The notes under the pieces: generated by a model | The model's database searches: none | The model's input: only the letters and a program-made list of their open reading frames with translations | Told to the model about the DNA's origin: nothing | Position numbers and translations under genes: made by a program | From: Lama guanicoe | Taxonomy: Eukaryota | Length of the DNA stretch: 64,000 nt | Direction of reading: 5' to 3' | Assembly (NCBI GenBank): GCA_013239625.1 | Contig: MU056898.1 | Location: forward strand, 1,765,717 to 1,829,716 | Shown here: piece by piece, positions 2,873-53,929 of the stretch | How the letters are laid out: each line of letters starts with the position of its first letter | How positions within the stretch are numbered: position 1 is the stretch's first letter

Positions 2873-3960
2873 TGTTTTATTGTAGTAAAGTGCACTTCTG
2901 AGCTGTACACTTACAAGGGCTGAGATGGTAAATTTTCTGTTAAGTTCATTCACATCGTTGTGCAACTATCACCAGAAATGTTTTGTCTTCCCACCTGAGA
3001 CCCCTTCCCCATTAAGCACTGCCTCCCCCTCGCCGGACCTCCCCCGCCCCCGCCGTCCACTCTGTGAACCTGACTTTCCAGGGGCCCCATGGAGGTGGGA
3101 GCCACAGCATTCGTCCTCTGTCTCTCACATCCCGTGTCCATTCTAACCTGAGACATCCCGGCCCCAGCCCCAACCTAGTCACTGCAGAAGCCTCGTCTCC
3201 GCTCTGCTCTGCCCCTCCAGTTGGCCATCGGCGCCTGATCGGGTCACCCCCCTCCCCGGGTGTTCTGGCACCTCCCAAGCTCAATCTCGTGTTGATGCTG
3301 AGAATCCAGGGTCAGACCTGTGGGCGTTCCCTCACATCTTCTGTCTTGTGTGTCCCCAGTCTTCCACCCCGAGTCACATTCTCTGTCAAGCTGAGGGACC
3401 TGCCTGTCCCCAGCATCCTGCTCGCCTGTGTCATGAAGGGTGTTGCGTTCCATCAAGTGCTGTCTCTGTCAGCTGTTCTGACCACGTGGCCTTCCCCCCC
3501 TTCCCTGTCACATGTGGCGTACTACAGTGACGGAGGACTGAGCCAGCCTGGCGTCCCCGGGGGTCAGCCTTCCGTGGTGCTGGGACGCAGTCCCTTCCAC
3601 GTGGTGCAGAAGTCTGCTCGCCAGCATTTGGTGAAGGGTTTTTGCATCGAGATTCACGAGGGGCATTGGTCTGGGTTTTTCTTGTCGTTGAGCTGACCTA
3701 GCCGGGTTTAAGTCAGCGTACTCAGTGTTAATTATTCCTTTAGTGTTCGGTGGGATCCGCCGGTGCAACCCTCTGGGCCTGGAGAGTTAGTTTTCAGGGG
3801 TCTGGATCTCCTTCCTAAGTTTCTCTTAGTAGTTCTCTGTTCCCTGCAGACGCTTTCGGGTTCAACGTCTGTTTCTTTAAACGGGTGAGGGCTTGGCTGT
3901 TCCAGAGCTGCGCTTCACGGGCTGTCCCGAAGTCCCTGTGAGCCCTTCGTGCCGCCTCCT
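2873..3960 (-). mobile_element. Ancient L1M fragments (3' end plus ORF2 relic)
   Basis: ttcattcacatcgttgtgcaactatcacc resembles an L1M 3'UTR, and 3430-3785 aligns by eye with the L1 ORF2 relic at 52510-52920. Boundaries approximate. Confidence 0.7.
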
Positions 3961-4021
3961 TGCGCTGGTCCCCTGGCCAACAGACGGCGTCGCTGCGCTT
4001 GTTCTGTGTTTTCATCTTCAT

Positions 4022-10651: not shown

Positions 10652-11716
10652 CTAGACGGTGCTGCTGAACTTGACCTCTGACTGCTCGGTGCTGTCCGGG
10701 ACAACCGCCTTCAGGGCAGCGTGACAGACGCGGCTCAGCGCCGACACGCTGGTTTTCTGCTCGACGTACAGCCTCAGTTTGTCCCTGAAGGTCTCCCCGA
10801 GAAAGCCATAGATGAGGGGGTTCAGGCAGCTGTTGGAGAAGGCCGCCAGGTTGACGATGTGGCCAGTCAGCGGGTAGGCGTGGCGGAAGGACTGCTGGCA
10901 GGGGGCGGCCCCTGGCTGCGGGCGCTGCAGCAGGTGGACGCTGATGAAGACGTTCTCAGGCAGCCAGCAGATGAAGAAGACCAGGACCACGGCGAAGATC
11001 ATGCGGAGGGCCTTCTGCCTGCGAGGACGCAGGTCCCGGTGCCCCTGCGCCGAGACCAGCACCCGCGCGATGAGTGAGTAGCACAGCCCGATGACGGCGA
11101 AGGGGACGACAAAGCCCAGCGTGACCTCCAGCCACTGGACCTCCCTGACGTCCGCAAAGCAGAAGCAGGCCTCCTCTGTGTGCTGCAGCTGCACGGCGGT
11201 GAAGGGCACCAGCGTGGCAGACACGGAGGCCATCCAGATGAGGCCGCAGCTCAGCCGCGCGCGGGGCTTGGTGCGGAACAGGCTGCAGCGCATGGCCTTG
11301 GCCAGGGCCAGGTAGCGGTCGAAGCTCATCCAGGTGAGGAAGAAGACGCTGCTGTACATGTTGATCTGCAGGAAGAGCGACATGAAGGTGCAGAGCACGG
11401 TGAGGTCGTAGTACTGCTCGTCCAGGTTGAACACTTCGATGAGCGAGTCCGCCACCAGGATGAGGTCGGCCGCTGCCAGGTTGATGAAGTACAGGTCGGG
11501 GACGGTCATCCGCTCCCGGAAGCGGATGTTGACCACCAGGATCAGGATGTTCCCCACGAAGCCGATGGGGAAGAGGAAGACCGTGTAGAGGCAGGAGAGG
11601 AAGAGCCCGATGGCATACTGCTGCTGCTCCCAGAGCACGCCCGAGCCGTTGGCCAGCGCGCGGGGCAGGTCGAGGCCCGCGGGGCTGCCGTTGTAGGCGC
11701 CCAGCTGCGTCTCCAT
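10652..11716 (-). CDS. GPER1: G protein-coupled estrogen receptor 1 (GPR30), 354 aa, intronless CDS
   Basis: The translation matches GPER1 throughout: [48 protein letters not shown] and C-terminal PDZ ligand FSSTV. The track ORF starts at a GTG (11773). The first in-frame ATG is at 11716, in strong Kozak context (ggcATGg). Confidence 0.97.
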
Positions 11717-18653: not shown

Positions 18654-18659
18654 TTTATT
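18654..18659 (-). terminator. Candidate polyadenylation signal of the orphan 7TM gene
   Basis: AATAAA on the - strand in an AT-rich patch ~1.25 kb past the stop codon; another candidate lies at 17799-17804. Confidence 0.35.
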
Positions 18660-19914
18660 CTTTGGGTTGCAGATTAACATTAAAATATTCACTACAATAG
18701 AAGCTATCGCAACAACGGAGTATCGCTCAGCGTTAGAGAGAAGCGAGCTTCCAAGCTGCACCTTAGTGTGTGGCCTCAGCCCGCCTGACCAGGCTCCGCT
18801 CTGTGATTCTAGTACGTGGCCTGGAGACGGCAGACCTGTGGAGACAGCGAGAGGCTCGGCGGGCGCCGGGGAGGGTCAGGGTCAAGCTGCAGGCGGAGGG
18901 CTGGGGGTTTTAGGGCAGCGAAACTCTCCCATTTGATTGGACAGTGAAGGACGCACGCCGTTGTACCTCTGTCCAAACCACAGGATGGGCGGCACCCAGG
19001 GTGGACCCTGATCTACCCGAGGCCTTGGGCGACGGTGACGTGTCCACGTACTCATGGGCTGTCGCACCCCCTTGAGAGGGTGGCTGTGCATGTTTCGGGG
19101 CAGGAGGCAAACAGGCAATTTCCTAATTTTGCTGCGTCTGAAAAATGCTCTAAAAAAGTAAGGTCCTAGCTTCTTTTTTTTTTTTTTAACTATTAAAGGT
19201 GTAGGTCTTATGCAGCCAGAGAGATGCCATTCTTTGCATGTCTCTGTGCTCTAGTCAACCAAGAGAATCTTAACATAAAGCCAGCGACAACAATGGAATG
19301 AGACTGATCACCATGCTCTGCATCCTGATGTTTCACTTTCTGCAGATAACATCAAACAGAACAGCTGAGACTTTGGAAACCACTTTCACTGATCACCCCG
19401 GGACGGCCACCTCCTGTCCACCAGGTCATGGGGACCAGACCGCAGACCTCCAGGGGTGGTACATTTGAGGACAAAACAAGCCTTTGGAGACGTCTGCACT
19501 GCCCCCACTTGCTGGCGGTGCTGGAAGTTAACCAGCCTGGCCATTCAGGGCCAGAGTATAGTGTGGCCATCAAGTTACCTAAATAACGTCTCTATTTTCA
19601 GGGTTCCCTCTTTGCCCTTCGCTGGCGCGGGGGAGAGGTGCCGGCTTGCAGACGAGGTAGAACCTCCCGCCTGGGTCAGGTGTGTTGCCAGCACCTGCCC
19701 CCTCCAGACTCATTCCATCAGGTGTGAGTGTTGGTTTGGGCTGAGCTGTCTCGCTTTTGCAGAAACTGAGTTGCCCATCAAGCTGATTTCTAAGTGCCTC
19801 CTAGACAGACCGTCATCCCTGCTGACTCTGAGCAAGTCGCTCTGAGTCTTGGCAGAGCCAGGAAGAGGCCCTCACTGGCCTGTGTGGCTTGTGTTGGGAG
19901 GTAGGGGCTCCGAC

Positions 19915-20904
19915 TTAACTCCCCACTCTATTCAGGGAGAAGTTGTTGCTGGCCTCTCTCCTCCGGCACCTTTGGGTGAGCCGCTCCGGGAGGCTCAGCA
20001 GGGCCTGCCTGCATGGCCGGTGGAGGAGGAGGGTGGCCAGGGCAATTGCACAGCTCTCCCCAAACAGGGCCAGCTCCGCCAGGTTCATGAGCAGCTCGTC
20101 CCGGGGGGCACCGATGTCCCTCCGCAGCTTCAGCCGGGCCCGCTGGACAAGCGCGGTGTTGTAGAGGAGGCGGCAGGCGAATGAGGCCAGGGTGATGGCC
20201 AGAACCACCCAGCAGTGAGCTGAGCCCGCGTCCCCCTGGGGCAGAGCCGCCCAGCCAGCCCGCTGGATGCCAAGCAGGGTGAGGAGCACAAGCTTCAGGA
20301 CGAGGGCCAGCCCGAGGCCCAGGCTGACCTTCACGATCTCGTACTCGGGCCAGGCGGTCAGTGGGTCCACCTGGCACAGAGTGGGTTCGTAAAGCTCCCC
20401 GGACGTGCCCAGGAGGGCCACCACTCCCAGGGAGCTGCAGATGGCACAGCCCCCAACGGCGGCCAGGCTGGCTGCGGGCCTCTGGGCCCCTTGGGGGGCC
20501 GCGCGCAGGCAGGACGGGCACTGCAGCAGGAACGCGGAGAGCATGGCCACCTGCACGTACTGCGCGTTGAAGTAGCAGATGTTGAACACGAGGGACAGAA
20601 CGGCACAGCCCAGGTGGGTCGTGGCCAGGTAGTCTGGCCGGCCAATCGCTGTGAGCGAGAGCAGTGTCACCAGCAGACCAGTGGCAGTGAGGTCCGCCAG
20701 GCAGGCATCCAGGCCCTGCAGCCTGGCGCGGCCTCGGACAAAGGTGGTCAAGTTGAAGAGCCCGGCCGCCAGGCTCAGCGGTAGGAACAGTGCCGTGTAG
20801 ACAAGCGTGCACCTGGACACGAGGCTCTGCGCGGCTATGACCTCTTCCACAGCCGTGGAGACGCGGCTTGGATACCGGATCCAGGACATGTTGTGGGTGC
20901 TCAT
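19915..20904 (-). CDS. Divergent orphan class A (rhodopsin-like) 7TM receptor, 329 aa, related to GPER1/GPR146
   Basis: Intact ATG-to-TAA ORF with seven hydrophobic segments that align by eye to the neighbouring GPER1 and GPR146. It has an N-terminal sequon (N5-M-S), Cys100 at the top of TM3 and Cys177 in ECL2. A splice acceptor (gctgcttctgttccAG|) lies 16 nt before the ATG, which has a purine at -3. Confidence 0.85.
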   Translation of the reverse strand: MSTHNMSWIRYPSRVSTAVEEVIAAQSLVSRCTLVYTALFLPLSLAAGLFNLTTFVRGRARLQGLDACLADLTATGLLVTLLSLTAIGRPDYLATTHLGCAVLSLVFNICYFNAQYVQVAMLSAFLLQCPSCLRAAPQGAQRPAASLAAVGGCAICSSLGVVALLGTSGELYEPTLCQVDPLTAWPEYEIVKVSLGLGLALVLKLVLLTLLGIQRAGWAALPQGDAGSAHCWVVLAITLASFACRLLYNTALVQRARLKLRRDIGAPRDELLMNLAELALFGESCAIALATLLLHRPCRQALLSLPERLTQRCRRREASNNFSLNRVGS

Positions 20905-23900
20905 CTCGGCCGGGTCCCACCTGGAACAGAAGCAGCGGGGGACGTGGGCCTAGCGTCAGGCTGCCCCCTGGGTTCGGGACAGTCTGGGACCTCGTTAAAG
21001 ATATTTCTGGGTCTTGCCCCCTTTCCCGCGGAGGGTGAGGGCATGGGGCGTGGTATTAACAGCCATCTTCCCTGCGGGGTGGATCCTGGGGAGACTCCTC
21101 ACCCCACCCCTCTAGCACCCCCTCCCCTCATTGCTGACAAACCGCTTTCCCCGTCCCGCCCCTAGAGCAGATGTGTGCCGGGCCCCTGTCTCCCAAACAG
21201 GGTTCCGTGGGGGGTGTCCAGGCAGGAGGGCTAGGGCTTCCGTTTTGAGCCCATTGTCCTGCTTTCCACACCCAGGCCCCTGCCCTCCAGGGGAGCGGCT
21301 AGTGCCCGCACTGCAGGTGTCACCAGCTCTGGCCCACTTGTGGGGACTCTGCTCAGAGCTGGAGTCCAGGAGCGAGGGCTCAGCCCTCCTGGCCTGGCCT
21401 TGCCACGGGAAAAACCTCGTTTCTGTGTACATGTCGCCCCCTCCTTAGATTTCAGCCAAACAGCAGGCGAGGCTGGCAGACCACACTGCTGTTTGTTCAA
21501 AGCCATTGCGAGCAGGAAAAACTGGGGACGGACCCAATGAAACGCTGAAAGGCGGGCGTGGCTCCCCCTGCTGGGGACGGGCCCCCAGCCTACGGCGGGT
21601 GTGCCAAGGCTCGTCCTCACTCTGCGCCAGGCCGGCTCCATTGCATGGTGACCACGGGCAGTGGGCGGGGGTCTGTGCAGACGTGGGTCCACCGTGGCTC
21701 CTCTGGCTGGCTGTCTCAGCACACGTGTGTGTGGCAGGCTCGTGTGCCACATGAACACTGACTAACCTGTGTCTGCCGCGACATGGCTGCTTGCTTGCTT
21801 TCCTGGAGAGCCGTGCCCGTGTGCACCCTGCTCTCGTCCCGCCAGCCTGTGGGGGTGGCGGGGCCCGTGTGCTGCAGGGGGTCATGACGTCTTCCACCTG
21901 CCAGGGCTCAGGGGTCAGTGACTCCCTGAGTGACGTCACACCTAGGACTGGTGGCCAGACCGAGAGGAAGTGACTTGGAGTGTTTCCTTGATGAAGGCAA
22001 ATTGGAAAGAAGATGCTGTGAACCACTGACCCTGGTGCAGGAAACAGCCTCAGGCTGGCCAGCATTTCAGGCCTTCTGGAGCAAACGCCCTTGTCCTTGC
22101 TGGTGGCATTTGGGGCATTCTTTATCAGGGGCCACCCAGTTGTGGGTGTGACCTAATGTGCTGGCGGGCCCCGCGTCCCATGTCGCCCAGCCAGGCGGAG
22201 GGAGGGCGCGAGTCCAAGCTGGGCCCGGAGTGCGTCCCGGACTCTGCCGACCGGAAGCCCTCGCCTGCTCCTCGCCGAGTTGAGTGCTTCTCTCCAGGCC
22301 AGGCCTGCCTTGGGGCGAAAGGGGCTCCAGCTTCACGGGGTCATCCTCCCCCACGGTGTGAGCTGTCCGGTGGGAGACCGTGGACTTGGGGGTCCTCAGA
22401 GGAGAGAGCAGACGGGCTCCCAGGAGTTGGGGCCATGGTGGACAAACTGTCTCCACGCGTGGGGTGTCCCCACGTGCACAGGTCGGAGCACCTTCTGTGT
22501 GAAGGTTTGCTCAGACCTTGGTTTTCCGCACGAAGCAGGTACACGTGTGAAACCACTTTCCAGCTGAGGTGAGAGTCATGGAGCGATGTCCAGGCCAGTG
22601 TCCAGACCTGCTCCTAGACCATGGGGGCCGTGGGCCTGGACATCCAGCCCCACAAGCCCCCCTGCACGCAGGGCACCCCAGAACCCCGGTGCCTGTCCTG
22701 GTGGTCCCTTTCCACCCCTGCGGACGTCCAGGGCGTGTGAGCCACCTGTTCTTGGCACCTGCTGTGATGCTGCCCTGGCAGAGGGCTGGCCCCTCACCTC
22801 TGAGCAGGACTTGCTGTGTGGACGGCCACTCCGTTTGAGTAACGTTGGGGTTTTGACTCTATGAATAAAGCTGCTTTTTAGAATTTGAATGTAGTTTTCA
22901 CTTGAGCACTTTCTTTTCTTGGGTGAGCACGCAGAGCAGGTCTGCCAGTTCTCAGGGTAAGTGTTTAACTTCACATGAAACTGCTTGCATTTTCCCGCAC
23001 GGCCGTCTGTCCTGCCTTCCAGCCGGGAGCTCTGATGCCTGCGCTGCTCCAGCAGAAACGGCGGTTCTTACCTGAGGCTCAGGGTTTCCTGGGAGGACAG
23101 GCCTCCATCTTGTTCTGGTGCCAGTTTCAGGCCAAGGACCAGGGCTTCTGGGGCCCTTCCTCAACTACACAAAAGGGCTGCCAAGGTCCAGCCTCCCAGG
23201 GGACTCCCAGGGCCAGAGCCTCGAGAACATTGTGTTCTCTGCTGCAGCTCCTTAAATAGTTTTCAGAGTGGCTCTAGGAAGCGGGTTCTGCCTCACCGGA
23301 GTTAGAAGGGCCGGTCCCCGTGGCCCCAGGGGTCCACAGTGGGTGTGGGTGGTCCTTGCAGCCCCTCCCAGCCCCGGCGTCCAGACCTGGCTGCGTCCCG
23401 CCGTCTCGTGGCCGCCCTCCCCTGCACTCGGTGCTCTCTGGTCAGACCTGTATTGTTGTGAGCGAGCTCCAGGTCCAGCGGGGCCACTCGCTCCATTTCG
23501 CATTTCCCCGCTTCCACACGGATGCGTCATTGCCATAATTACCGTAGTGCCACTGACACCCCCCGCCCGCCCCGCACCCTGCACGTTTAACAGCACGTGT
23601 ACACTGTCTTGATGGGGGTGCGGGCAGGCCATGCTGCCCTCCTGTGCCAGCCAGGGGACCGTGTCTGACAGCGGCGTCCTAGAGTGTGTGCTTCAGGTTG
23701 TGGTCTCGCCTGAGGGGCCCAGCCTTGGCCACTGTGGTCAGTGCCTCCCGGCAGGGCCGCCACATGTTCCCTGGCCCTCCCAGCACCACCTCGAGTCCCG
23801 TCTGGCTCTGCTGCTGGGAACTCCTCCGCCCTGCGGTCACCACTCGGGCCTCTCCCGAGCTGACGGGGCAGCCGACGGGAGGCCCCAGGCCTTAAATCAA

Positions 23901-26900
23901 GGTCCATGCGGACTGGGTGAGCCGCCGCCCAGGCCCAGCCCGACCCGAGTTGCTGAAGGCCTGGCTGCGAGGGGACGCCCAGGGCCTCACTTCCCGGTCT
24001 GTGACAGCAGGTGCCCGGACGGGCTGTTTACCACCCAGCAGCTTCATGACAAGGTGAGCCTGGCACGTGGGGCGTGGGTCAGCTCCCTCCCGCCCTCCTC
24101 ACACTGAGTGCCCGTCCCCGGCACACGGAGCAGCCCCGCCGCCGCCGGGAAGGGGCCTCCCTGTGCAGGGCTCATGCCCGGTCCTCTGCGTGGAAGGAAA
24201 ACCCAACACCCAGTCAGCGCTGGCTGCTTGCTGACAGCTTCCTCCCTCGTCTACAGGACACAGAGCTGCGGCCTCTGCTCGCCTGCCCTCAGGGACAGGG
24301 ATGAGAAGTCTGCTCGCTTCAGATTGTTTTCTTTGCCACTGGGACCCACTTCGAGCAGAGACAGACTTTCGTTTTCAGAGAAGCTGGCTCCAGTCTACCG
24401 GCTCACTCTGAACGCTGAGAGCCAGGGCTTGGAAAGCAGACAGGCGACCAGAGGGGGGGGGGTGGCTCCCCTGCCGGGGTACCCAGCTCCCGCTCCTCTG
24501 AGGCCGCACCGTCCAGCACCGTCTTCCCGCCCCTGGGCTCACCCTGCCTTCCGGGCTCTGTGCTTACTGGAAGGAAAACAGGAATTCACTCTTAAGTCAT
24601 TCAAACCACACGCTGCATTTTAAGCAAACTTGGTTTGGCCACGTGACCCAGAAAAACCCAAATTGACCTAGAAGGGAGCTGGCTTCAAGTTGCAGACAGA
24701 AAAAGTAGTGTGTGTGCCTGGGCCAGTGGTTTCCTGCACGCTCCACACGCTGGCTCGTCCACAGGACAGCCCCTCCCAGAAAGCTGGCAACGTCTGCAGC
24801 TTAAAACGGGACCCAAAGCCCCACACCCAGCACAGGGGACTGTGCTCGCCACCTGTCTGCCCTTCCCCTCAGGGTGCCCAGGGTCTCCCTCTGCCCTGTG
24901 ACAGCCAGTGGACGCCAGGTAATGGGGGTCCTGAACGTGGAGCCCGGGACCCCTCCCTGCCGCCCTGCGGGCCTGGCCTGGCCCAGATGGGCGCTGTTTC
25001 AGGGGGCGGGGGAGGGGGCTGTTCCAAAGCACCCTTCTTTCTGCGTGGGGTCCTCCTCGCCCCACCTCCCCGAGTGGGCTGGGCAGCTGGCAGGGAAGAG
25101 TTTTGGAGGGAGTAACCAAGGACAGGGTAACCCAACCCCCAAGAGTGGGCCCCCAACTCTGAGGGTCTTCCTGTGCGGTACCCAGTTTGTCTGGGGTCCC
25201 TGACAGCATGCATGTCCCATGGGAGCACCGTGGGAAGCCCACGGAGGCCCCAGGGCGGTGAAGGACGCCCCCAGGGCCTCAGGTGGGCTTTGCTGGGGGC
25301 CCTGGTGTTTGAACGTCTCTTACAGCTGTGCTGCCCACGCTGTCCTGTGATGTGTGATGATGAGACCGGGGACCCCGTTCCCAGAGCCCCGGGTCCAAGC
25401 ACGGCTTTGGAGCGTGCTTGCAGGGGTAAGCCTCGCAGACGTTTGAGGACCACTGGGTGTGGGGAGGCGGGGGAGGCACGCAGCGCTTGGTGAGGAGCTG
25501 GGCCTCTGCCTGTGTCGTCATCCTGGGTCTCCTCGGGCTTTCGGGCGACGAGGTGCTATGCTGTGAGACCCCGTGGCCAGCCACCCGCCACTGGCGTCCC
25601 GAGCCTGCAAGCCCAGGGAAGGACCCAGTCCTGACAGCGAGTGTGGGCTGCGCGGGAGGAGAGCTGGCGAGCAGGTCGCTTGTCACCCGGAGCCCCGTGC
25701 AGGACCCTGAGCCGCCAAGCGCAGAGCGGGAGAGGCTCACGGGCCCCTGCCCCGGTCATTTCAGAGTGGGCTCCGCCGCCGCCTCCTCAGATGGGCCAAC
25801 AGCCGTTCAGAAAGCCCTCCCTCCGCCCGTTTTGCTTCCCTCCATGGCCCACCCCACCCCTGCCGTGGCCCCGCGTTCTTTCCAAACTTCAAACCAACCA
25901 AAAAGTGAAAGTAGTTTTGTACCTCATATGACAAGGTACTTACGCATCATAAAGGGTTTTTTTTGTGTGTGCGTGTGCAGTTGATTATTGAAGAGACCTG
26001 CCCACCCTGTCAGGTAAGTTTACCGTTGAGTTTGAGGCATGAAGAGGAAGAGGGTTTCCGTTCTCCAGCAGTGAGCCTTAGCGGCGGCCGTGAGTTTAAG
26101 AAAAATGAAGGAAAAGTTGTGCATCTTTTTTGTTCCATGAGCATGTCAGCGCTTTGCCTTTGGCTGCAGCTGTGGCTGTCTTGCCGTTTCCAGACATGGG
26201 AGACAAGGTGGCTGTTGTAGTCGCTGATCCCGTGAGAATGTGAAACTGGGTAACATATGAAATGCAAAAAAAAAGAAAAAAAAAAGGCGCGCTGGGTCTG
26301 AGCCAGGTCCCGCAGCTCTGGGCCTTGCTCTGCGCTGGAAGCTGGTGGCCGTGGGCCTCCACCCTGTGCCTCCTGTCGGGAGCAGGTGACGGAGCTGCTC
26401 ACTGTTGTAAGGCCCCTCGAAGTGGCGGAGCAGGCGGGCTGCAGGGGGAGGGCCCGGTCCCCTGGCCGCTGCTGCTCCCCAGGAGGAAGGACAGGCCCCC
26501 AGGAGGAGCAGCCCCGCCTTGCACTTTGGGGGCTGGCCTGCCTTCCACGCCTGCGAGCTCAGCCCCTGGGGTTTTTCCATCCAAGAGGCCTGACTTAGCA
26601 AAACTGGCTTCCCTGTGAACCCTTCCAGCCTTGCGGGGAAGTTTCTGAGCACCTGGAAGAGCCACAGGCCCATCTCCCCGGAACCTCCAGTCTCCCACAG
26701 GGTCGGGAGGCCCTAGGGCAAGTCTCTGGTTCCAGGGGGCAGCGGCCGCCCCCTGCAGGATGGCGGTGACGGCGCCCGTGTTCAGAGCAGCTGTTTAAGC
26801 AGTAAATGAGCTGACGGCTCCGAGTGTGAGGACAGAAGGTCAGGGGCTTTTTGGTGGACAAGGTGACCTCCCGCCCATAGAAGGCCTGCCCTTGTCCGTT

Positions 26901-27627
26901 CCCGGGGCCTGCCTGGAGCCCCTCGGCGCACCGTCCGTTTACTGCTGGGGCTCCTTCTGTGAGCACCAGGCCACCCACCCATCCCACCGGGCGCTGGCGT
27001 CTTCTGTGTCCACAGGTCTGACCTGCCTCCCCACTTGGGTCGTCTGTGCCCCGAGGCCGCCTGCTCTGGGCTGGGTTGGGGGCAGGAAGCAGGGCTCCCT
27101 GGACGGAAAGCCACGTCTCCTCCCTCCTGGCCTGCAGCGTCCGCCCTCCCCAACACACAGCGGCCCAACCGCCTCGGCACACATGTGGGAGCTGGTGAAG
27201 TCACCAGCCGGGAGGCGGGAGCAGGGGGTGCTCTGTGCACCTGACGCCTGGAGTGTCACACCCCCCTCCCACCCACGAAGCACAGGACACCTGACCCCCC
27301 CACCTCCCGACCTGTCCGCCTGGGGGGTGGGCCGTCCGACCAGCGTTGGTCGTCATGTCAGTCGTGCCCCAGATCACTGCCCACTGCCTTGCTTCTCTGT
27401 GTGTCCCCAGCCTCATGCTGAGGAGGCCAGGAGACTGGTGACAGCTGGATCGAGGGGAGTGGCTCCCCCCCACTGCCCCTTTCCGGGACGCACTGTCCTT
27501 CTGGTGAGCCCAGCGGTCAGACTTCCTGTTCAAACCCACAGACAGGGCAGGGGAGCGGACGCCAGGGCGGGGGTGGTGCTGTCATTTCCTGCCTTGACAC
27601 CAAGACGCCTCTGCGTGTAGAGGAGCC

Positions 27628-28000
27628 GCTTTATTCAGAGTGTGTGTTTTATACCACATCACTCACCTGTCTTAAAGTACAGTTCAGTGTTGCTTAGGAA
27701 ACTCACGGGCTTGGGCAGCCATCACCACAAGGCACTTTAGGGACATCCTGAAGGGGGCGGGTGCCAGGACCCCAGGGCAGCACCGTGGAGACTGGCGGTT
27801 TTCCCGAGCATTATTCAGTCTTGGGACCGTGACGCGCCTGTAGAAGTTTCCTCGTCTGATCGTGAGACCCGAGGGGCGTTGGGGACTGCAGTGGCAGGTG
27901 GCTGCGGGTTCCTGAGGGGCTGGTTTTGTGACAGCGGTTCCTGTACAGTCCTCCAAGGCCTGTACCTGTTCGGGGGCCCCGACTGTATGATCACCCAGTT
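27628..28000 (-). mobile_element. Degenerate L1M 3' fragment
   Basis: cttaaagtacagttcagtg ... gcagccatcaccac resembles the L1M 3' terminal consensus. Confidence 0.5.
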
Positions 28001-31000
28001 CAGAAAGTCAGAGGACATTTAGCCAAACGTGAGGCGGCGGCAGAGGCCTGCCTGAGGCTGGGAGGGCGGAAGAAGTGTGGGCCGCAGGGGCAGGGCCTCC
28101 CAGTTGTGCCGGGAAGGAGGGCTGCGGTGCAGGGGCTGCTGGGGATGAGGGGCTCGAGGTTTGGAGGGCAAAGGCCTTGCATGGGTCTGCGAGTGTCCTT
28201 GGCCATGTCAGCTGTGGGGCCTGTCTGTTTGGGGCTCCCCACCTCTCCGGGCAGGGGGTCCGGGGCTCTCCAGGCCCTGGGCGCCGGCCTGAGCGCACAG
28301 GCGCACGGTGGCCGCTGGAGGGAGCCCCGCGTGCGCCTGCTCCCGAGGCTGGACGGCCCCGCTGAGTCGCCCGTTATCCTGCTTAGAGCCTAGACGCGCA
28401 CAGCCACTTGTCTGCCAGCGTCTTATTTCACAGGGTCAGTGACAGCAGTGGCAGGCGGTTTCGAAGCAGCCCTGCCCCCTTGCCTAGGAAACAGCTAAGC
28501 TGTCCACACACCGGGAGGAAGTGCCCGGTTCTAAGTGGCCACTGCAGGTGGCCGCTGTGCAGGCGGCCCCGACTGAGAGGGAAGCTCCCCCTGGCTGCTC
28601 CCTGTTCCACCCCACGCCGCCTCCGTTCTGCACAGTGCCTGAGCCTTGGCCTGGAAACGTGCGGCCCCAAGTGAGCACCAGGGTGTCGGCTCTGCCCCAG
28701 CGGGGCTGGGGCCCCAGACTCCTCCCATCCTGCGCTATAGTGTCGCTCAGACTCGTGCCGTAAGGAGCCTGAGGTGCTGCGCTGAAGGCTCCCTGGTTAA
28801 GTAAGGCAGGGAAGGGCTGTGGACGCCCCTCCTCGGGTGTGACCTGGATGAGGAGCCCTGCGCCTCCGGTCGCCGCTCGCCAGCCCTCTCCTGCTCCCCT
28901 GGTCCTCAGCCCCCACCCCGCACCCCGTGACCTGTGCTGGGAGGGGCTGCGGCCTCACCACTCAGGACCCTTGGCCGGCGTCCCCCGGGGCTTCGGCTCA
29001 CCCGCATCCCCGAGTCCTGCAGAACTCAGTCGCATCCACACGCCAGCCAAGGCCGAGCCGGGTCCTGGGCTGGGCCCTACACTTTGAACTCCGTTCTGTG
29101 AAAAGGGGCGCCCTCCCCTCACGTCTCAGGGTGGCAGGGTGCTGGGTCTGGGGTGCAGTGCTAGAACCTCGTGGACATGACCCTCCCCACCTCCCTCCCT
29201 TGAGCTCCAGCCTCTGCACGGCTCGGCCTGGGGCTAGTTCCTGACGCACGGGGTGTCTCATCACCCAAAAGCCAGTGTTGATTCCCTTGTCCTAGAGGGT
29301 CCTCTCCGCTCACCCGCCTGCCCTTCGCAGGTCAGCTCTGTGATCACATCTCTTCCGCCAATGGCTGAGTCCTTCTGCGCCTGGAGGTCGCTCAGGCCGC
29401 GTCTGTTTCCCATGGCAGCTCGGGCGCCCCTCCCCCAGGTGCCCTCGTGTGGAGCAGGGACCCTCGTGGGGTCCACGCAGGGAGGCCTGGTGAGAAACGC
29501 AACTATTGCTCAGGCGTGTCAGCACCTCCAGGGGCTGATGCTCGGCCTCCTGCTCCCCCGTCTCCAGGGGGGCAGGGGCACAGACAGGCTCAGAACCCCC
29601 CCGGTCACACAGCAGGTGGCAGCTGTACCCCGAGCCAGGCAAGGGGTTTCTCTTCGAAACTGGGACACGTAATCAGCCCCTCAGTTCCCAGAGCCCTGAT
29701 GCTCCATGTCCTCTGGGGATGAGGGTGCAGTTTCTGGGCGCCCCCTACTCTCTGGCCAACACAGGCACGTTCTCCTCCTGGGACTTAATCCCGTGCTCGA
29801 ACAAAGCCACATGCACATCGGGGCTGCTGCAGGCAGAAGGTCTGGGGGTCTGTGAGGGCAAGTCCGCCCACCAAGGCATTGGCCTGTCCTCAGAGGGAGG
29901 GAGGGAGTCGAGGGGTCACCTCCCGGCGTCCAGAACAGCCTGGAATCAGTTCAGTCCTGGGCCGAGCACCTGAAGAGGACGCAGGGTCAGAGGAGCCCAG
30001 GGAGGAGGAGGGGGCTTGGGCGGGCTCTCCAGCCGGGCAGGCCTGGGTTTCTCCTCGGCTCTGGCTCTCCACGCATCAGCCAGGTCACCTGGGGGTGCTG
30101 GTGCTGTCCATTCCACATCTGCTCGTGGCAGGGAGACCAAGGGTTTGAACACACTTGGTGCTGAGTGTGTCTGGTTTAAGTGCTGGATGAACGGGGGGCT
30201 CACGTGGTTGGTCGTGTCTTTGGGTCTGTAAAGGGCCAGCCAGCACAGGGAAGGGGGTCATTCAGAGGCAGACGCAGCACCACCAGTGGGGTTACCAGGG
30301 GGCGGGTCTGGCTCCAGGTGGTGGAGACCAGGGGGCTGGGACCCTGTGGCTGAAGACAGTGGCCTCAGGCAGGCCTCCAGAGGGCCCCCGGCCTGGCGAG
30401 GAGCAGGCTCCCAGGGAAGTTACGTCACAGGTCCAGTTCCCAGTGGGGTCGGGGTGGTGCTGTTGCAGGTGTGCCGGTAACTGGGTGACACGGGGGCTCC
30501 TCTTACTGGTCTCCACTTCTGTTTGCAGTAAGTGGTTCCTTGGAAAATAACCTCACCTATGTTGACAGGCAGCTGGGGTTTGGGTCTAAGTCTTGGGCTC
30601 TGTCCCCGAAGTGGGGTCTGCTCAGGGAGGGAGGCTGAGGAGGGGAACATGAACGCAAGCTGCTCAGACCCGCCTTCCATGCGCGCGCTTCGCGCAGTCT
30701 GGCGGAGTGCTTGCCATGCAGGGCTGAGTGGCCGGGACCACCGGACACCCTCGGCCCTGTCCTCCCCGGAGCCCTGAGTGTGGCCAGGCAGTGTCCGTCC
30801 TCTTGGAGGGTCATGTGCCCGTGACAGACTCTGACAGAGCTGCAGCGACGAAGGGGAATGGGGCTCGGGGGGGGCAGGGGGGACTCCACGTGTGACGAGC
30901 CGGCCCAGCCCAGGATCCGCCCACTGGCGTGGCTCCTGCATGGCTGCTGCTGGAAGTGCCCGCCGTCCGGGGACCCCGCCATCCAGCCCATTGACATTTG

Positions 31001-33448
31001 GGGCCAGCTGTACCGAGTGCAGGGGTCCCCCAGAGAAGTAGCCAAGATGCTGGGGTTTAAGTCACGAGGGGAGGGGCCATCTTGTGGTACTTTTTGTGCC
31101 GGTTTCTGGTACACGTCACACACCCTGCAGATCACACGTGATGGTTCAGAGATCCGACAGTGAGGCTCAGACGACTTCCTGGCCTTCCAGTGTGGGTTTT
31201 TCTTCAGTGTCTCCCTCAGATGCATGTGTAGGACTTCAGGCCACCCGGGCCGATGTAACGGATTAGAAATAAGAAAGCCCCCAAAAATCCTGACGGATTT
31301 TAAATTCAAGAACTTGACTTGTAATTTAACCTCTTGATGACTTACTCCTGTTGGTCCTTTGTCCGGAGGTTCTTACAAAGGAACAAATGTTTGACTTCTT
31401 GATGTGTCTGCCAGTTAGCAGATCCAGGATCCTGCAGTGACCTTTGTAGCCTTCATGAAGGAAACTCAAGGTTAAAGGCACCTTTTGGGATCTTAAATAA
31501 CGAAGTGTAGTGAAGTAGGTGAGCTTTTGTTTATCAACAAAAATAAGAGCATTGATATTAGAATTATAGTGAAGTGTCAATAGCAAAACTAAGGACCTTG
31601 GGACTGTACTGAAAAGCTTATATTCTGGTATCTTGCAAACACATTTGAAGAAATACAGGATTGTTCAAATGAAAACAAAAACAGGGCTGAGTTCACAGTC
31701 CACCTCAGCTCTTTCCAAAGAGCTCCTCAGTCTCTTCTGAACAGCCCAAGATCCGTCCACGGCTGAAGTGCTGGCTGTGGGGCATAACAGAGTGGCCGGG
31801 AAAGGATGGAGGCGAATGCCACACAAGAACGTTGGGCAACAAAAACACTCAAGAAAAAAAATAAAAACAGAATGGGCAGACGCGGACTGAGAGGAGGTTC
31901 TGTGTAGGGGAGCTTGAACCTCCCACGGTGCGGGGTTCTGCACCGGGGACCCCGATCCAGCGGCAGGAAGTGCTGTCCATGGGGCCTGCTGCCCCCAGAG
32001 GTGGACACTGCCACGGGGGAGGAACAGAAACATGTAGCTGCCTGGGCGGGACCCCACCCCACCCCTGGAGGCCCCAGAGACCAGCCAGCTTGTAACCAAG
32101 GCCACTGAAACGGAAAAGGAAAAAAAAGTGATTTGAGGCCCCTTTGGCTCTTCGGGCAAGATAGGCTGGGCCGGGGGCCAGGGACCAAGGGCCCAGGTGG
32201 ACCCCACCCCAGGCACTCTCTGTACTGGAGCGGAGACTGGAAAGGATGAAGAAGGGGAGGGTCTTTTATTTTAAACCTGAGGCACCCTCCCCTAGTGACA
32301 GTGCTGTGCCAGGGACCCTGCAGGGTGGCCCTGTCACCCCCTTAGCCAACTCCAGGGCATCCGAGGGGAGTCACAGGCGCGGACCGGCCCTGGTGTGGCT
32401 CCTCCAAGACACACGGCCCTCGGGGCAGGTCTGAGTGGGGGCGGTCAGGCCTGAGACTGTCAGGGTTGAAGAGTCGTGCCCCCAGCCGCTCTGGGGACCT
32501 GGAGCGGCAGAGAGGTGGCTGTGCTCTTGAGCATAAAGAGCCCTTCACCGACCGGCACGACGCAGAAACCTCTTCAGGGTCTGCGCCCCGCGTGGACTGC
32601 AAGGGGCCAGCCCGGCGCCTGGTGTGTTTCTGGGATTCTGAGCCGGCAGCCTCTGCAGAAAAGTAACTGACCCTCCCGGGAGGCCAGGCCCCAGTAGAAG
32701 CCTCAGAAGTGGGGCTGCACTCATCCCCGGCCGATGGGTCAGAATGCACGAGTTTTCAGGTTGTCGGAGGTACAGGTGCTGCGGGAACTGCGATCACGGA
32801 GCACGGAGCGGGTGGGGGGCACGGAGGGAGGGGAGGGAGCGCCGCCTGCAGGCTCCGGGCAGGGCTTGCTGCCAAAGGAGTCTGCTATGAACTTGAGAAA
32901 ACTGTTTTTAGAGCTTTTAAGGGTTTCAGAACTGAGGATTAGAAGGTCGTGGGCCGTAATTTCATCAACACTTGGGGTGGAGGAAGCGTCTCTTTGGTGT
33001 TTTTAAAGGAGGGAGCGGGGTGGGCGGGACCCCTATGCTGGGCTGGGACCGTGGGAGGAAGGGTTGCGTGTTCCCGCACCGCACCTGTGCGCACCTGGCT
33101 GGTGCCAGAGCAGCTGCATCCAGTCCAGGAGTGTCCTCATGTCCCCGAGCGCAGAGCAACCGAGACCTGGTGGCTGCACACCAGTCTCCGTCCGTTCTTA
33201 CCACCTGTGGGCCCCGTCTACAGACCCTCTGTCCTGAGGGCGGGCCCTTCCAGCTTTGGCGTCAGGTTAAAACCCTCGCAGACCTGTACTCAGAGCCCTG
33301 GGAGGTGCTCTGAGGGCGCACCTGGGGGTAGTAGGGGCCGGGCACCGCCTCCCGCTTCCCTATCTGACCCTCCCCTTACCACTACCTCTGCAGGGCCCAC
33401 CAGCTCCAGCCCCCCCACCCCCAGGTGTGCATGTATTGTTTCCTTCAT

Positions 33449-33454
33449 TTTAAT
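33449..33454 (-). terminator. Candidate GPR146 polyadenylation signal (ATTAAA)
   Basis: tttaat on the + strand within an AT-rich segment ~400 nt past the stop codon; an AATAAA alternative lies at 32265-32270. Confidence 0.4.
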
Positions 33455-33853
33455 ACCTTGTGATTTTCCCACCAGACGTCAATTTTCATAAACAAGAAGA
33501 TAAGAGGGAGGAATCAAATATTTGAACAATGCAATGTATAAATACTGACTTTAGATATTCATCACTTCATTGGAAAGCCCTGCGTAAGGCTGAGGGCGAG
33601 CAGGTTGTCGAGGGCGCCGACCCGAGCCGTGTGTGTCAGGAGGAAAACACACCCCAGGAGCAGCGGGGCGTCCTGGACGCTGCTCACCCCCACCCAAGGG
33701 CCATGGCCTTCTGTGGGAAAACAGAAAACTTCAAGGAACACGCCCCCTGCTGTTCTTGGTTCTCTCTCAGCGCGTCTCCTGGGGGTCTCCTGAGACGGGT
33801 GGTGCGCTCCCCGCACTGAGTCTCCAGCTGTGCGCAGGCCTTGGACAGGCCGT

Positions 33854-34855
33854 CTACGCCATCGCCTGCTGCGGCCCCGCCTGGTCTAGGGCGCAGCCCT
33901 GCTGCCCACGGTGCACCTTCTTCAGCAGCCGCCGGAGCTTGCCGGGGAAGTTTCTGTTGATGTAGCGGTAAAGCAGCGGCACCACTGAGCTGCTGGCGAA
34001 GGCCAGGGACCGTGACAGGTCCTTGGCAAAGCGCAGCATCCGCAGGTGGTGCCCATCCAGGGGCTTGCCCCGCGCAGCCAGGATCGTGTGCCCCAGGAGG
34101 GTCAGGTAGTGAGGCGTCCAGAGCCCAAACTGCACACACACAGTGGCCACCAGGAGCCTGTGCACCGAGGGGTCCAGCCACCCCGCGTCCTGGTCAAGCG
34201 GCGTGTCCGCCTTCCGGACTCGTGAGAGGAGCACGAGTGCATAGAGCACGGCCAGGCCGGGCACCAGGTACCCGGTGAGCACCAGGATGGCGTCGGCGGC
34301 CTCGGTGTCCTGCATCCTGGCGCATTCCGCGAGCCTGGCTGCCACGTGGCCGCAGATGTAGAAGAGCAGGGAGGAGAAGCTGGTGAGCAGCGCCCCGCCC
34401 CAGACGAAGCCACACACGTGCCTGCTGTTGTAGACACTGGACATATAGGTGCGCGGCAGGGCCCGCTCAATGTAGCAGTCCAGGCTGAGCAGGGCAGTGG
34501 AGTACAGGGTCACCAGTGAGGACACATTGAACAGCACGAGCAGCGTGATGTGGACCGCGCTGCCCAGGTCCCACAGGGCCCACCCGGAGGCACCAGGGCC
34601 CAGCAGGTGCACGGGCGCCAGAGCGCTGAGGACCAGGCCCGCCACGGCCATGTTGGCGAAGTAGACATCAGGCATGGTCATGCTGCCCTGGTCCTGCAGG
34701 TTGACCGCGAGCAGCAGCGCGTTGTAGCCCAGGCCCACCGGGACACCGACCACCAGGTGGAGCAGGGACAGGGCGGACAGGGCCCGCTGGACGTGCGGGC
34801 ACAGGAGCTGGTCCTCACCCCCGCCCGTGCCGTTGAGAGGGCCGCAGCTCCACAT
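33854..34855 (-). CDS. GPR146: G protein-coupled receptor 146, 333 aa, intronless CDS
   Basis: The translation from [10 protein letters not shown] contains [42 protein letters not shown] and PLLYRY. An acceptor (ctctgcgctctccccacAG|cccgccATG) lies 6 nt upstream, so the first 63 aa of the track ORF are probably not coding. Confidence 0.96.
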
Positions 34856-37800
34856 GGCGGGCTGTGGGGAGAGCGCAGAGTGAGTGCCTTCCCTCCAGCC
34901 CACCGCTGTGGCCTCACCCAGCTCTGAGGGTGTCCATGGGCCCTGGGGTCTGCCCTGGACGTTCCCCCCCATTCTCATTTCAAAGCCCCTCCATGGGCAG
35001 AGGGCGTGGGAGCTGCAGCCTGAGGAGGGTCCCGCCCCATCCACATGACCTTACGCTCCCGAGCATCTCCCGTCCTAGCCTGGCTTTCAGGGCCTCCGCT
35101 TCCCCTGCCTCACTCTGTGCCCCACAACTGGTGCCAAGAAGGAGCCCGGCAGCTGAGCCACCCCTGGCCTCCCCGTCTGTCTGCAGCCAGCCAGTGTGCG
35201 CGCGTGCGGGTGGGAGCCTCACGACATCCCCCTCACCCCCTGCCCAGCCCCTCCCTCTCTGCTCACAGCCAGTTTTGGGCAGTAACGGTTGAGTCTGAAA
35301 GGGCTGGCACACAGGGTGGATGGCCCCACCCACTGGTGGCAAGAAGGCAGGTCCCCTGCTGCCCCTGCCCCTCCCTGGGGTCCAGACCCATCCTGGTGGA
35401 CCACAGGTTCAGCTTGGAGGACTCCTACTGCGCAGGTGTCTGCAGGAACTAGGAACTGTTGGCCCTCCGCGGTAGAGAGGGGCGCACACGCAGCTGAGGT
35501 GGAGGAGGGAGCAGAGCGGCCACAAGGGGTTGCCTGCCCTGGGCAAAGAATGGCTTGATTCTTGGGAAAGCGTCACACGGAGTAAATCTGCTCAGAATTT
35601 TCCTTCATGGGCCCACGTGCTTGTGCAGCGGCTCGCCAGGCCCAAGGGGGCTGTGAGGGTCTGAGCTGTCGGCTGCGCTGGGCTTTAGGTTAAAAACCTG
35701 CCTGAGTTTTTGTTCACGGGCAGATCACAGCCACAGAACTGACACACTTTGCTTCATGAGCTACTAGTAGCTCTTACGTGTCAACTACCAGTCACGTGCT
35801 GGGCTTCAAGTGCTGGGCGTGAGCTCAGAGGCCCCACTTTTCCTCCACTTTCGGTCATTCTCTTGCACAGTGCAGACAAAGCAGAGCAGAGGCTGCACCC
35901 ACTGGCACCCCGAGAACTGCAGAGCAGCACTGGGTCTGGCAGGAGAGGCGGTCACGTCGGGAAGTGTCCACCTGCCCAGGTGGCAGGGCAGCTGGTGTTC
36001 TGGGGACGGCGGCGGGGGCTCCTGCCCTGTCCAGGGACTGGGAGACTCCTGCAGGATGCTCCTACCTGTCATCCTGCACCTGTGACCCCAGAGACACTCC
36101 TGAGCCCCAAGCCTGCCCCAAGGCTGCAGAGACCAGCCCTGCCTCTCCCCATCTTGTTTCCCAGTGGTTGCTACCCCACTTCTCTTCCGCACTCTGGTTT
36201 TGCAAGTGCAGGAATCTGGGAACAAGACTCCTCCCCCGGCCCCAGCTGTCTGGGGAGGGGGCCTGAGGACAATGGCTTGGCTGCCACCCTCCACATGGTC
36301 TGAGCTGGGCTGTCTTTCAAGTCACCAGGTTCTCTGTTCACTTCCTTCCTGAGAAAGAGGAACTTGGACTCCAGCCAGCGCAAAGACCAGAATTCCAGGA
36401 AGGGCCCTCTGCGTTTCTGTCCCTCTCAGAGGCAGGAGAGAAGGGACAAGGTGGCCCCTGCCTCGTGGGGCTGGATGCTCCATGTTCTGCAGTTCTCAGT
36501 CTGAAGGCGGCCATGCTCTCCCCAAATGGCAGAGTTAACAGTCCAGCCTCTGGCGACCCCATCACCTGCTGCATCCCCTCAGCTCAAGGGGTCAGGGTCA
36601 GCAAGGACCCCAATGGCCTCTCCTCCAGGCTGGCCCTGTCACCACACCCCGTCCCTGGGTCCCTCGCTATACCTCCCAGGCAGAGCTGCCCACCCCTGCC
36701 TCACTGCACTGCCCACTGGGCTCTTCTAGGCCCCTCTGGGCCCTGCATCGCCCTCTTCCGTGCTCCCTCTCCCCCCACTGCCCCCCTCTGGGCTGCCGGA
36801 CCTGGCTACCCCTCATCTGCCTCCTGTCTCTGCCAGGCCGGCCTCCAGACTCTCACTGGCTGGTCTGGCCGCCTCCCACCCTCCCCACCCTTCCCTGTGC
36901 TGCTCTCAGCACCAGCACCCATAGAAGGTGCCTGCGCCAGTCCTACCTGCCGTCCTGCCTCTCCCACAGGACTGCACCCCAGGGTTCCTCCATTGGACCC
37001 CCACTCCTGCCACCCGGCTGTCTCAGCCAAACCCAGTTCTGTCCCTGAACCTCTTCCTTCTGCCCAGTCAGGGTCCTAGCCTCCCCCCCTCCCCCAAGAT
37101 GGCTTCTGCGAGCCACAGCCCCTCCCTTCCCTCACTGCACAGGGACCGGGACCACACCAAGGCGCACACCCAGCCACTGGGGTGCACACGACCTGCTCAC
37201 TCTCGGGACCCTGGCCTCCGCAGTGATGTGCTGTGCATGGCCTCTCTGAGCCAGGACTGCCACCTGCCTCGGTCCGCAGAGCAGGGGCACGCCGAGCACG
37301 GGCAGGTCCACAGTGATGCCACGGCAGGACTGCCGGGCCCCGGTCTGGCTTGGCCAGGGAGGGGCCGCAGGAGGCCTGCCCACTGTGAGGCTGGAGCCTG
37401 GAGGTGGCTCTGTGGGCTGGGCCCTGGCACATGCCGGGGGTTGTCTAAGGTGGTCTGGTGGTCACTGGGTCCTGCTATCCTGTAAGGAGAGTAACGTGAT
37501 GTGAAGGGGACTGGCACCCCGTCTTTCTGAGGGTTTTGTTTTGTTTTCTGATTCTGCTGGTGGGACAGCTGTCTCAGCGCTGCGAGCACAGGTGGCTCCC
37601 CAGCGCCCGCTCCCCTCCAGCTCCCCGCTGGTCCCAGGGGGCAGAGAGGTCTTCACAGCTCCAGGGCAGGGTGATCCCGGGCTGGGGGCCAGCAGGCCAG
37701 CCTGGCGGAGCAGAGACTGACTCAGTGCAGGCCGGCTCAGGGCCCTGGGCCAGGTCCCCGAAGTACCGCTCACCTGAGGCTCACAAGCAGGGGTCAGCGC

Positions 37801-51103: not shown

Positions 51104-51288
51104 NNNNNNNNNNNNNNNNNNNNNNNNNNNNNNNNNNNNNNNNNNNNNNNNNNNNNNNNNNNNNNNNNNNNNNNNNNNNNNNNNNNNNNNNNNNNNNNNN
51201 NNNNNNNNNNNNNNNNNNNNNNNNNNNNNNNNNNNNNNNNNNNNNNNNNNNNNNNNNNNNNNNNNNNNNNNNNNNNNNNNNNNNNNNN
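51104..51288. other. Assembly gap (185 N)
   Basis: Run of n characters. Confidence 1.
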
Positions 51289-53589: not shown

Positions 53590-53720
53590 TGTTCAGCAGG
53601 TGAAGCAGGGAAGGCTTCCCTGACACCGAGGGTTGATAGGGGAGCTGAAGTGAGGACGAGCTGTGAGCATTCCCGCCCCAGGGAAGAGCGTGTGCAAAGG
53701 TCCTGGGGAGACGACAGCGA
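53590..53720. mobile_element. L2 fragment
   Basis: cagggaaggcttccctg ... agggaagagcgtgtgcaaaggtcctgggg is a typical L2 3' motif. Confidence 0.5.
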
Positions 53721-53929
53721 GCCGGTTCAGCCCTGCTGCAGCTGGTGGGGATGTGGGGTGCGGACTGGGAGCAGCCGGGGGCCCTGCACCGCGTGGGTCT
53801 CCTGCCTCCCCTGTGGGGACCGCCAGCGCCCTGGTCCACTGCAGGCCTAGGTGTTGGTGGAGGCAGGGCCTGCCTGTCGCCAGGCCCTGGGAGAGGGCTC
53901 GTCTGCCACTTGGCGGCCGAGCTGTGGGC

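Follow-up and report, generated by a model that had tools for sequence, protein, structure and literature searches.

A GPER1-related orphan receptor gene between GPER1 and GPR146 in Lama guanicoe: predicted class A fold without the class A signature residues

We analysed a 64,000-nucleotide stretch of DNA from Lama guanicoe (assembly GCA_013239625.1, contig MU056898.1, positions 1,765,717 to 1,829,716), hereafter called the window. Between its GPER1 and GPR146 coding sequences (CDSs) lies an intact, single-exon, ATG-started open reading frame (ORF) of 329 codons (window 19915..20904), and all three are on the minus strand. Sequence comparison identifies this ORF as the camelid ortholog of mouse C130050O18Rik, rat LOC102546864 and Camelus ferus LOC102511494, a gene which is already known and annotated, is functionally uncharacterised and is not a discovery of this work. 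We refer to it as the orphan gene and to its product as the orphan protein. As judged from alignments and from a structure model, the product has the fold of G protein-coupled receptors (GPCRs) of class A, and the gene is an ancient paralog of GPER1 and not of GPR146. Taken jointly, the reality of the gene, its class A fold and its orthology appear to us practically certain.

Locus and gene model

The features of the orphan gene and its two neighbours are listed below in window coordinates, with the evidence in brackets; nt stands for nucleotides and aa for amino acids.

19915..20904, minus strand: orphan receptor-like CDS, 329 codons plus a stop codon at 19915-19917 (ORF list, orthologs, AlphaFold2 (AF2) model)
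20921..20936, minus strand: candidate 3' splice acceptor, a pyrimidine-rich tract plus AG (sequence, tract/AG scan)
20950..20952, minus strand: in-frame TAG, 15 codons upstream of the ATG, which closes the genomic reading frame (upstream in-frame translation)
18654..18659, minus strand: candidate polyadenylation signal AATAAA, the first past the stop codon, 1256 nt after it (hexamer scan)
10652..11716, minus strand: GPER1 CDS, 354 aa, downstream neighbour (82-86% identity to named mammalian GPER1 proteins)
33854..34855, minus strand: GPR146 CDS, 333 aa, upstream neighbour (ORF list)

The orphan gene sits 8.2 kb upstream of GPER1. In the simple tract/AG scan, the AG of the candidate acceptor ends at 20921 and the exon would begin at 20920, 16 nt 5' of the ATG. 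The hexamer scan gave further AATAAA candidates downstream of the gene, at 18535 and 17804. A previous reading of the sequence (the initial annotation) had described a clean 329-aa ORF with an acceptor-like site before the ATG, and this is what we found. It had also attributed the same architecture to both neighbours, which holds for GPR146, where an acceptor-like AG lies 6 nt before the ATG, and does not hold for GPER1, where there is none within 70 nt. An Rfam scan of window 19201-36000 gave no match.

Twelve ORFs of at least 250 aa are present within the window, so that the length of an ORF is by itself no evidence for a gene. Indeed, long ORFs are numerous and their length is uninformative because of the base composition: the G+C content of the orphan CDS is 0.85 at third codon positions (GC3), against 0.50 at second positions (GC2). 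A second-frame ORF of 330 aa (19928..20920, minus strand) spans the whole orphan gene; its translation is rich in Pro, Gly and Arg, it has no Pfam match, and the simplest explanation is that it results from the very high GC3 in the real frame.

Orthologs from shark to mammals

The status of the gene is settled by homology and not by ORF length. Among 5.8 billion proteins searched, we found 63 relatives, almost all of full length and with E-values (E) down to 1e-195; every one of them is a family member or a fused gene model. The best match was Camelus ferus LOC102511494, with 95% identity; rodent orthologs share 59-66% identity with the orphan protein and the platypus ortholog 53% over 98% of the length. 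Among placental mammals the gene is held by horse, rhinoceros, seals, dog, bats, moles, shrews, colugo, tree shrew, many rodents, lagomorphs and afrotherians, and among marsupials by seven species. It is also present in pig, warthog, mustelids, elephantfish and many birds.

A profile search of 1.84 billion representatives gave, at E ≤ 0.001, no more than 41 proteins, each a family member or a fragment; they were traced to a lizard, a newt, sturgeon, bichir, bowfin, gar, arapaima, one shark and teleosts. A second word search added 112 more fish proteins, nearly all labelled 'uncharacterized'. In a metagenome scan, a single locus was recovered, a bird ortholog with 39% identity. It occupies positions 3001-4020 (plus strand) of a 9.6-kb JGI metagenome contig as an uninterrupted, single-exon ortholog of 339 codons, whose cluster consists of raptor, owl and falcon proteins; this contig is probably bird host DNA within an environmental sample.

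Two of the relatives, from Nannospalax and Cricetulus, bear the name 'RIKEN cDNA C130050O18 gene' and match with E 1e-115 or better over 98-100% coverage. Together with the published description of the mouse gene (PMC7941205), they bear out the suggestion of the initial annotation that C130050O18Rik may be the ortholog. The same annotation had called the gene hidden, which has to be revised: the annotations of well over 100 species list it as an uncharacterised LOC gene, and the literature calls it GPCR-like. The exact window protein is absent from the protein collection, whereas the window GPER1 is present. We also observed that several annotation pipelines fuse the orphan gene with its neighbours or mislabel it. 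It appears as 'GPER1 isoform X2/X3' in Hipposideros and Falco and as 'GPR146' in Sciurus; further examples are a 792-aa 'GP146' model in alligator gar and a 438-aa GPR146 model in Myotis brandtii; and other members carry the names 'C3a anaphylatoxin chemotactic receptor', 'C-X-C chemokine receptor type 1-like' or 'OPSD'.

No primate, ruminant, cetacean or hippopotamus family protein was found among the search matches, and the same tool retrieved GPER1 of cattle, sperm whale (Physeter), hippopotamus and several primates. For primates, this agrees with a previous report that 1:1 orthologs exist in most vertebrates, primates excepted (PMC7941205). Within Cetartiodactyla, camelids and pigs hold the gene, which hints at further lineage-specific losses or missed annotations in this group.

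The residues that are invariant in the family, among them Y36, C100, N108, C177, D180, Y188 and E277, are all present in the window protein. At columns that are at least 90% conserved among the other mammals, the camelid copy departs twice, compared with a median of three departures over the 61 mammalian sequences, and a decay specific to camelids is thereby ruled out. From these few departures and from the intact orthologs between shark and mammal we infer purifying selection. The alignments indicate that the gene has been kept intact since before the split between sharks and bony vertebrates. By our own estimate, sharks and mammals diverged about 450 million years ago.

A predicted class A receptor fold

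The hydropathy profile of the orphan protein has seven peaks. An AF2 model built from 105 vertebrate sequences reached a predicted local distance difference test score (pLDDT) of 88.0 and a predicted template modelling score (pTM) of 0.86; it superseded an earlier, poor model from 29 mammalian sequences (pLDDT 58.5). The model contains seven long transmembrane helices (TM), helix 8 and a short hairpin in extracellular loop 2 (ECL2), with the following predicted boundaries in protein residues:

19-57: TM1
64-86: TM2
97-127: TM3
143-163: TM4
186-217: TM5
225-260: TM6
267-294: TM7
296-319: helix 8

When the model was compared with solved structures by Foldseek, only class A receptors were matched at probability 1.00 (CCR5, CXCR2, RXFP3, GPR30, CX3CR1, apelin receptor and ACKR3), with query-normalised TM-scores of 0.64-0.68. 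VIA-align likewise returned class A receptors throughout, with Z scores of 24.6-25.8 over 255-288 aligned residues; for GPR30 the Z score was 25.4, with a root mean square deviation of 3.0 A over 261 of 265 GPR30 residues. In the ESM Atlas, the neighbours of the orphan protein are its own cluster of 272 chordate members, followed by 7tm_1 clusters. Matching the orphan protein to Pfam 7tm_1 had been proposed as a check of the initial annotation, and here the outcome was negative: a Pfam scan gave no family at E up to 10. Within the family, 7tm_1 (PF00001) is matched by only 4 of 105 members. A match to NCBIfam FtsL (E 0.013) lies far below the cut-off and is meaningless.

According to the model, the orphan protein has a class A GPCR fold, with seven helices, helix 8 and the cysteines of the TM3-ECL2 disulfide. 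The earlier description of an intact seven-helix protein is thus upheld by hydropathy, by a confident model and by the similarity of that model to class A receptors of known structure.

An ancient paralog of GPER1

We compared family profiles with the sequences of the PDB. A mammalian profile found GPER1 first (E 1.5e-8, residues 26-309 against 54-342). A vertebrate profile again placed GPER1 first, with E 1.4e-13, followed by CCR6 (2e-10), GPR68, SSTR2, CCR5 and CXCR2. Human GPER1 proteins that came up in the search for named GPER1 proteins were excluded from the alignments. The family profile was also aligned directly to the two neighbours by hhalign. With the window GPER1, the probability was 95.9% (E 6e-9, 264 columns, about 20% identity). 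With the window GPR146, it was 1.7% for the mammalian profile and 0.2% for the vertebrate profile, and no specific relation was detectable. HMMER and hhalign also reproduced all six TM segments that the initial annotation had aligned to GPER1 by eye. Its proposal of an old paralog at this locus stands for GPER1, and kinship with GPR146 is rejected on the hhalign probabilities. The orphan protein is not itself the GPER1 ortholog: true GPER1 lies at 10652..11716 and the two, which are paralogs, are only about 20% identical.

The duplication is old, since both genes are carried by a shark and by bony fishes. In addition, the orphan gene and GPER1 are apparently on the same scaffold in Tupaia, Galeopterus, Dipodomys ordii, Sorex fumeus, Anolis sagrei, Lissotriton, Erpetoichthys and Acipenser sinensis, as judged indirectly from matching scaffold lengths. 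On a 226-kb contig of Acipenser, the locus tags of the two genes differ by two. The two scaffolds differ in several teleosts, where the genes are apparently on different chromosomes. The linkage of the orphan gene with GPER1 thus looks old and kept in most of the non-teleost lineages examined.

The two paralogs evolve at different rates. The window GPER1 is 83% identical to that of Tupaia, 80% to that of Anolis and 71% to that of sturgeon; for the orphan protein the corresponding values are 66%, 36% and 32%. From these identities, GPER1 is by far the slower-evolving of the two.

Absence of the class A signature residues across the family

Positions are given here in the x.50 numbering of class A receptors. 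At the seven x.50 positions the window protein has G48, G76, F125, G151, A200, L247 and A288, as against N, D, R, W, P, P and P in GPER1. The DRY motif is replaced by A124-F125-L126, CWxP by C244-R245-L-L and NPxxY by I287-A-L-A-T291. The replacements at 1.50 and 2.50 and in these three motifs had been called in the initial annotation, which also pointed to a Cys pair and an N-glycosylation sequon, and the calls are correct in the window protein. Indeed, the sequon is N5-M-S, and the two cysteines, C100 (3.25) and C177 (ECL2), are present in all 196 sequences of the family alignment.

In the same alignment, we found no DRY, no Arg at 3.50, no Trp at 6.48 and no Pro at 7.50; P6.50 and Y7.53 are absent from every member as well. 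At other positions the loss is graded: an Asp or Glu at 2.50 survives only in non-teleost fishes, early-branching teleosts and amphibians. Since the alignment runs from shark to mammals, the missing switches represent an ancient, stable state of the whole family and not as recent erosion. The proline at 5.50 (A200 in the window protein) is found in 135 of 135 non-mammalian and in none of 61 mammalian sequences, as though it had been lost once, cleanly, at the base of mammals. The window GPR146 has D-C-Y instead of DRY and also a Gly at 2.50 (A-V-A-G), the latter as pointed out before and visible in the translation.

Conservation is biased to the extracellular side

Three polar residues of the presumed pocket and its lid are nearly universal in the family: N108 (3.33) in 196 of 196 sequences, D180, three residues past the ECL2 Cys, in 195, and E277 (7.39) in 194. 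Among mammals, hardly any change is seen in the region of the N-terminal sequon, in ECL2 or at the outer ends of TM5 and TM7.

To compare the two sides of the membrane, we used the helices of the AF2 model to separate an outer from an inner half of the protein, and divided GPER1 at the equivalent positions. In placental orthologs, the majority frequency was 0.82 in the outer half and 0.69 in the inner half, and the entropy 0.68 and 1.12, respectively (Mann-Whitney p 2e-8). In placental GPER1, the majority frequencies were 0.86 (outer) and 0.91 (inner), without any extracellular bias. The least conserved segment of the orphan protein is intracellular loop 2 (ICL2), with a majority frequency of 0.49; conservation is also poor in ICL3 and in the inner half of TM5, and indels occur in ICL2 and in the stretch before TM6.

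We also observed a C-terminal motif, R-N-I-x-x-P-x-I-E-I, after helix 8 in ray-finned fish members and in one shark, which is not found in mammals, lizard or newt.

A possible charge pair in the sodium site region

Positions 2.50, 6.48 and 7.45 line the sodium site of class A receptors (PMC6037435). In the orphan family an Arg occurs at 6.48 (R245 in the window protein) and is accompanied by an acidic residue, at 2.50 in fishes and amphibians and at 7.45 in amniotes (E283 here). Of the 89 sequences with R6.48, 88 have an acid at one of these two positions, one shark being the exception. The 107 sequences without R6.48 are all from teleosts, and none has an acid at 2.50 or 7.45. The pattern fits 195 of the 196 family sequences, a figure which reflects very few independent events, perhaps one joint loss and one relocation. 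When covariation was scored by mutual information with average product correction (MI-APC), the three R6.48/acid pairs ranked among the highest 3.5%, 30% and 14% of column pairs, which gives no support beyond clade structure. The distribution suggests a buried ion pair. Its acid, which is at 2.50 in non-teleost fishes, early-branching teleosts and amphibians, would have shifted to 7.45 in amniotes, and most teleosts would have lost both charges together.

It is conceivable that R6.48 pairs with the buried acid and fills the sodium and toggle region permanently, which would yield a locked, ligand-binding and non-switching receptor of macrophages, lost in primates. We regard this picture as speculative and rather doubtful.

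Published expression of the rodent orthologs

Rat LOC102546864, described in 2021 as a predicted GPCR-like membrane protein of 334 aa and classed as macrophage-specific, is one of the 105 transcripts that Csf1r-knockout rats lose in the brain (PMC7941205). The same study reports that mouse C130050O18Rik shows expression in microglia as well as in most tissue macrophages and that its expression is CSF1R-dependent. In addition, C130050O18Rik is down-regulated in RAW264.7 macrophages after Brucella infection (PMC3716731).

Other features of the window

Window 51104-51288 consists of 185 N, an assembly gap or a masked segment. Window 53501-54628 has a GC content of 0.68, and each strand carries a long ORF (375 and 290 aa) whose low-complexity translation is rich in Gly, Pro and Arg; it looks like a region of the CpG-island type and not like coding sequence. 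Fourteen small sequencing runs, from one organism and six studies and only guessed to be RNA, each contained exactly 0.28 of the words sampled from window 19700-21200; for the runs of a second organism the fraction was about 0.9.

Discussion

Which function would be compatible with a class A fold that has lost its usual switches? The explanation that we favour, and hold to be reasonably probable, is that the orphan protein is a GPER1-paralog orphan receptor which binds an extracellular partner and signals in an atypical manner. The partner would be bound at a pocket formed by N108 and E277 and at a lid that includes D180 in ECL2, with the conserved N-terminus and the rest of ECL2 contributing. 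Binding would not lead to activation of G proteins by the DRY, CWxP and NPxxY route. The protein would instead act as an atypical receptor, namely a sink, a presenter or a co-receptor, and it would do so on cells of the macrophage and microglia lineage, a site suggested by the rodent literature only. The extracellular bias of conservation fits a ligand-binding protein whose transducer face is unconstrained. For the atypical, non-canonical character of the signalling taken separately, we see the chances as evenly divided.

Several observations weigh against this explanation. Helix 8, with its 'LHxPCR' stretch and a Cys near its end, is conserved, as are ICL1 and the inner end of TM7, and because of this an intracellular partner is possible. 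The argument from the polarity of conservation is indirect, and the absence of motifs does not prove the absence of coupling. A search of the literature found the mouse gene mentioned and nowhere characterised, and it found no functional data for any ortholog.

The strongest competitor is a conventional signalling GPCR, with its own ligand on macrophages, which couples to G proteins, arrestins or both through replacement switches, for instance R6.48 and E7.45 in place of the toggle and the sodium site. Its class A fold is intact, with helix 8 and the conserved Cys near its end, and solved complexes (PDB 8xof and others) show its closest relative, GPER1, coupled to Gq. Moreover, R245 and E283 are invariant in 61 of 61 mammals, and this suggests that the core is functional and not dead. 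However, R3.50, W6.48, P6.50, P7.50 and Y7.53 are missing in every member of the family, the usual transducer contacts in ICL2 and ICL3 are the least conserved parts and carry indels, and the outer-over-inner bias is not seen in GPER1. We consider conventional coupling unlikely, without dismissing it.

Could the protein be a seven-helix molecule with no ligand of its own, such as a structural partner, a chaperone or a heterodimer subunit, possibly of GPER1 or GPR146? This would agree with the lack of all activation motifs, with the apparently very long linkage to GPER1 deduced from matching scaffold sizes, and with gene models that fuse the orphan gene to GPER1 or GPR146. The fused models, however, are most simply annotation artefacts of neighbouring genes, and the gene is kept in several teleosts although it is apparently on another chromosome than GPER1. 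In addition, conservation peaks at the N-terminus, ECL2, the outer ends of TM5 and TM7, 3.33 and 7.39, which are ligand sites and not the usual dimer contacts of class A receptors. Such a role is, in our opinion, improbable.

That the ORF arose by chance in GC-rich DNA, or that it is a pseudogene decaying in this lineage, might be argued from the equally long second-frame ORF, the 12 long ORFs of the window, the lack of a Pfam match and the absence of the exact protein from the collection, and is in practice refuted by the intact full-length orthologs from shark to mammals, by GC3 of 0.85 against GC2 of 0.50, by the confident structure model and by the lack of excess changes at conserved columns of the camelid copy, which leaves it a negligible probability.

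The interest of the gene lies in its being a deeply conserved relative of GPER1 that has stayed uncharacterised in function, probably since humans lack it. Entry points for experiments are the seven class A signature residues that are absent here, with DRY, W6.48 and P7.50 absent family-wide, and the conserved pocket with N3.33, E7.39 and the ECL2 Asp, together with an extracellular conservation bias that GPER1 does not share. These features can guide the choice of mutants and of the side of the protein to be probed. The biology of rodent macrophages and microglia, as far as it involves C130050O18Rik, may not transfer to humans.

Comparison with known receptors

With mouse C130050O18Rik, rat LOC102546864 and Camelus ferus LOC102511494, the comparison is one of the same gene in other species, given full-length orthology and the shared family invariants. 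The camelid protein differs from most mammalian orthologs at 2.50, where it has G and they have N or S, and at 7.49-7.50, where I-A stands in place of N-S; a one-residue insertion before TM6 also sets it apart from other mammalian orthologs.

With GPER1, the orphan protein has in common P1.44 (in mammals), the pair formed by C3.25 and the ECL2 Cys, C6.47, the pattern F7.43-x-x-S7.46-C7.47, the strand and the locus. The Asp three residues past the ECL2 Cys is also shared (D180 here, D210 in GPER1), position 3.33 is polar in both (N108 against Q138), and an Arg of ECL3, R268, aligns with R299 of GPER1. In GPER1, D210 and R299 have been described as interacting, and the residues reported to be essential for the response to bicarbonate are E2.60/2.61 (E115), Q3.33 and H7.36 (H307) (PMC13476069). 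Here, E115, Q138 and H307 correspond to A86, N108 and N274, so that only the polar 3.33 is retained; since these residues are mostly not kept, we do not propose bicarbonate sensing by the orphan protein. GPER1 keeps N1.50, D2.50, DRY, W4.50, P5.50, CWLP and NPLIY, whereas the orphan protein keeps none of them.

Beyond GPER1, the predicted fold is nearest to the chemokine/apelin/GPER1 branch of class A, and CCR5, CXCR2, CX3CR1 and ACKR3 are among the top Foldseek matches. CCR6 was also matched by the profile, and the relation in sequence is with this branch as a whole and with no single atypical chemokine receptor (ACKR). In ACKRs the DRY region is altered or missing, as it is in the orphan protein, and a Glu at 7.39 is typical of chemokine receptors. 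However, no ACKR is known that lacks NPxxY, CWxP, N1.50 and W4.50 all together. The N-terminus of the orphan protein, about 18 residues long and with no obvious sulfotyrosine or acidic stretch, is also unlike that of ACKRs and chemokine receptors.

Expression in the leukocyte lineage of rodents (PMC7941205) can be likened to that of chemokine receptors, and the teleost members have Q at 6.48, like CCR6, CCR9, CCR10 and ACKR4 (table in PMC6037435). In CCR10 and CXCR6, R at 7.45 combined with Q at 6.48 provides a tethered positive charge beside D2.50 (PMC6037435). In the orphan protein the positive charge is placed at 6.48 instead of 7.45; furthermore, the other microswitches are retained in CCR10 and CXCR6, and both receptors signal through G proteins.

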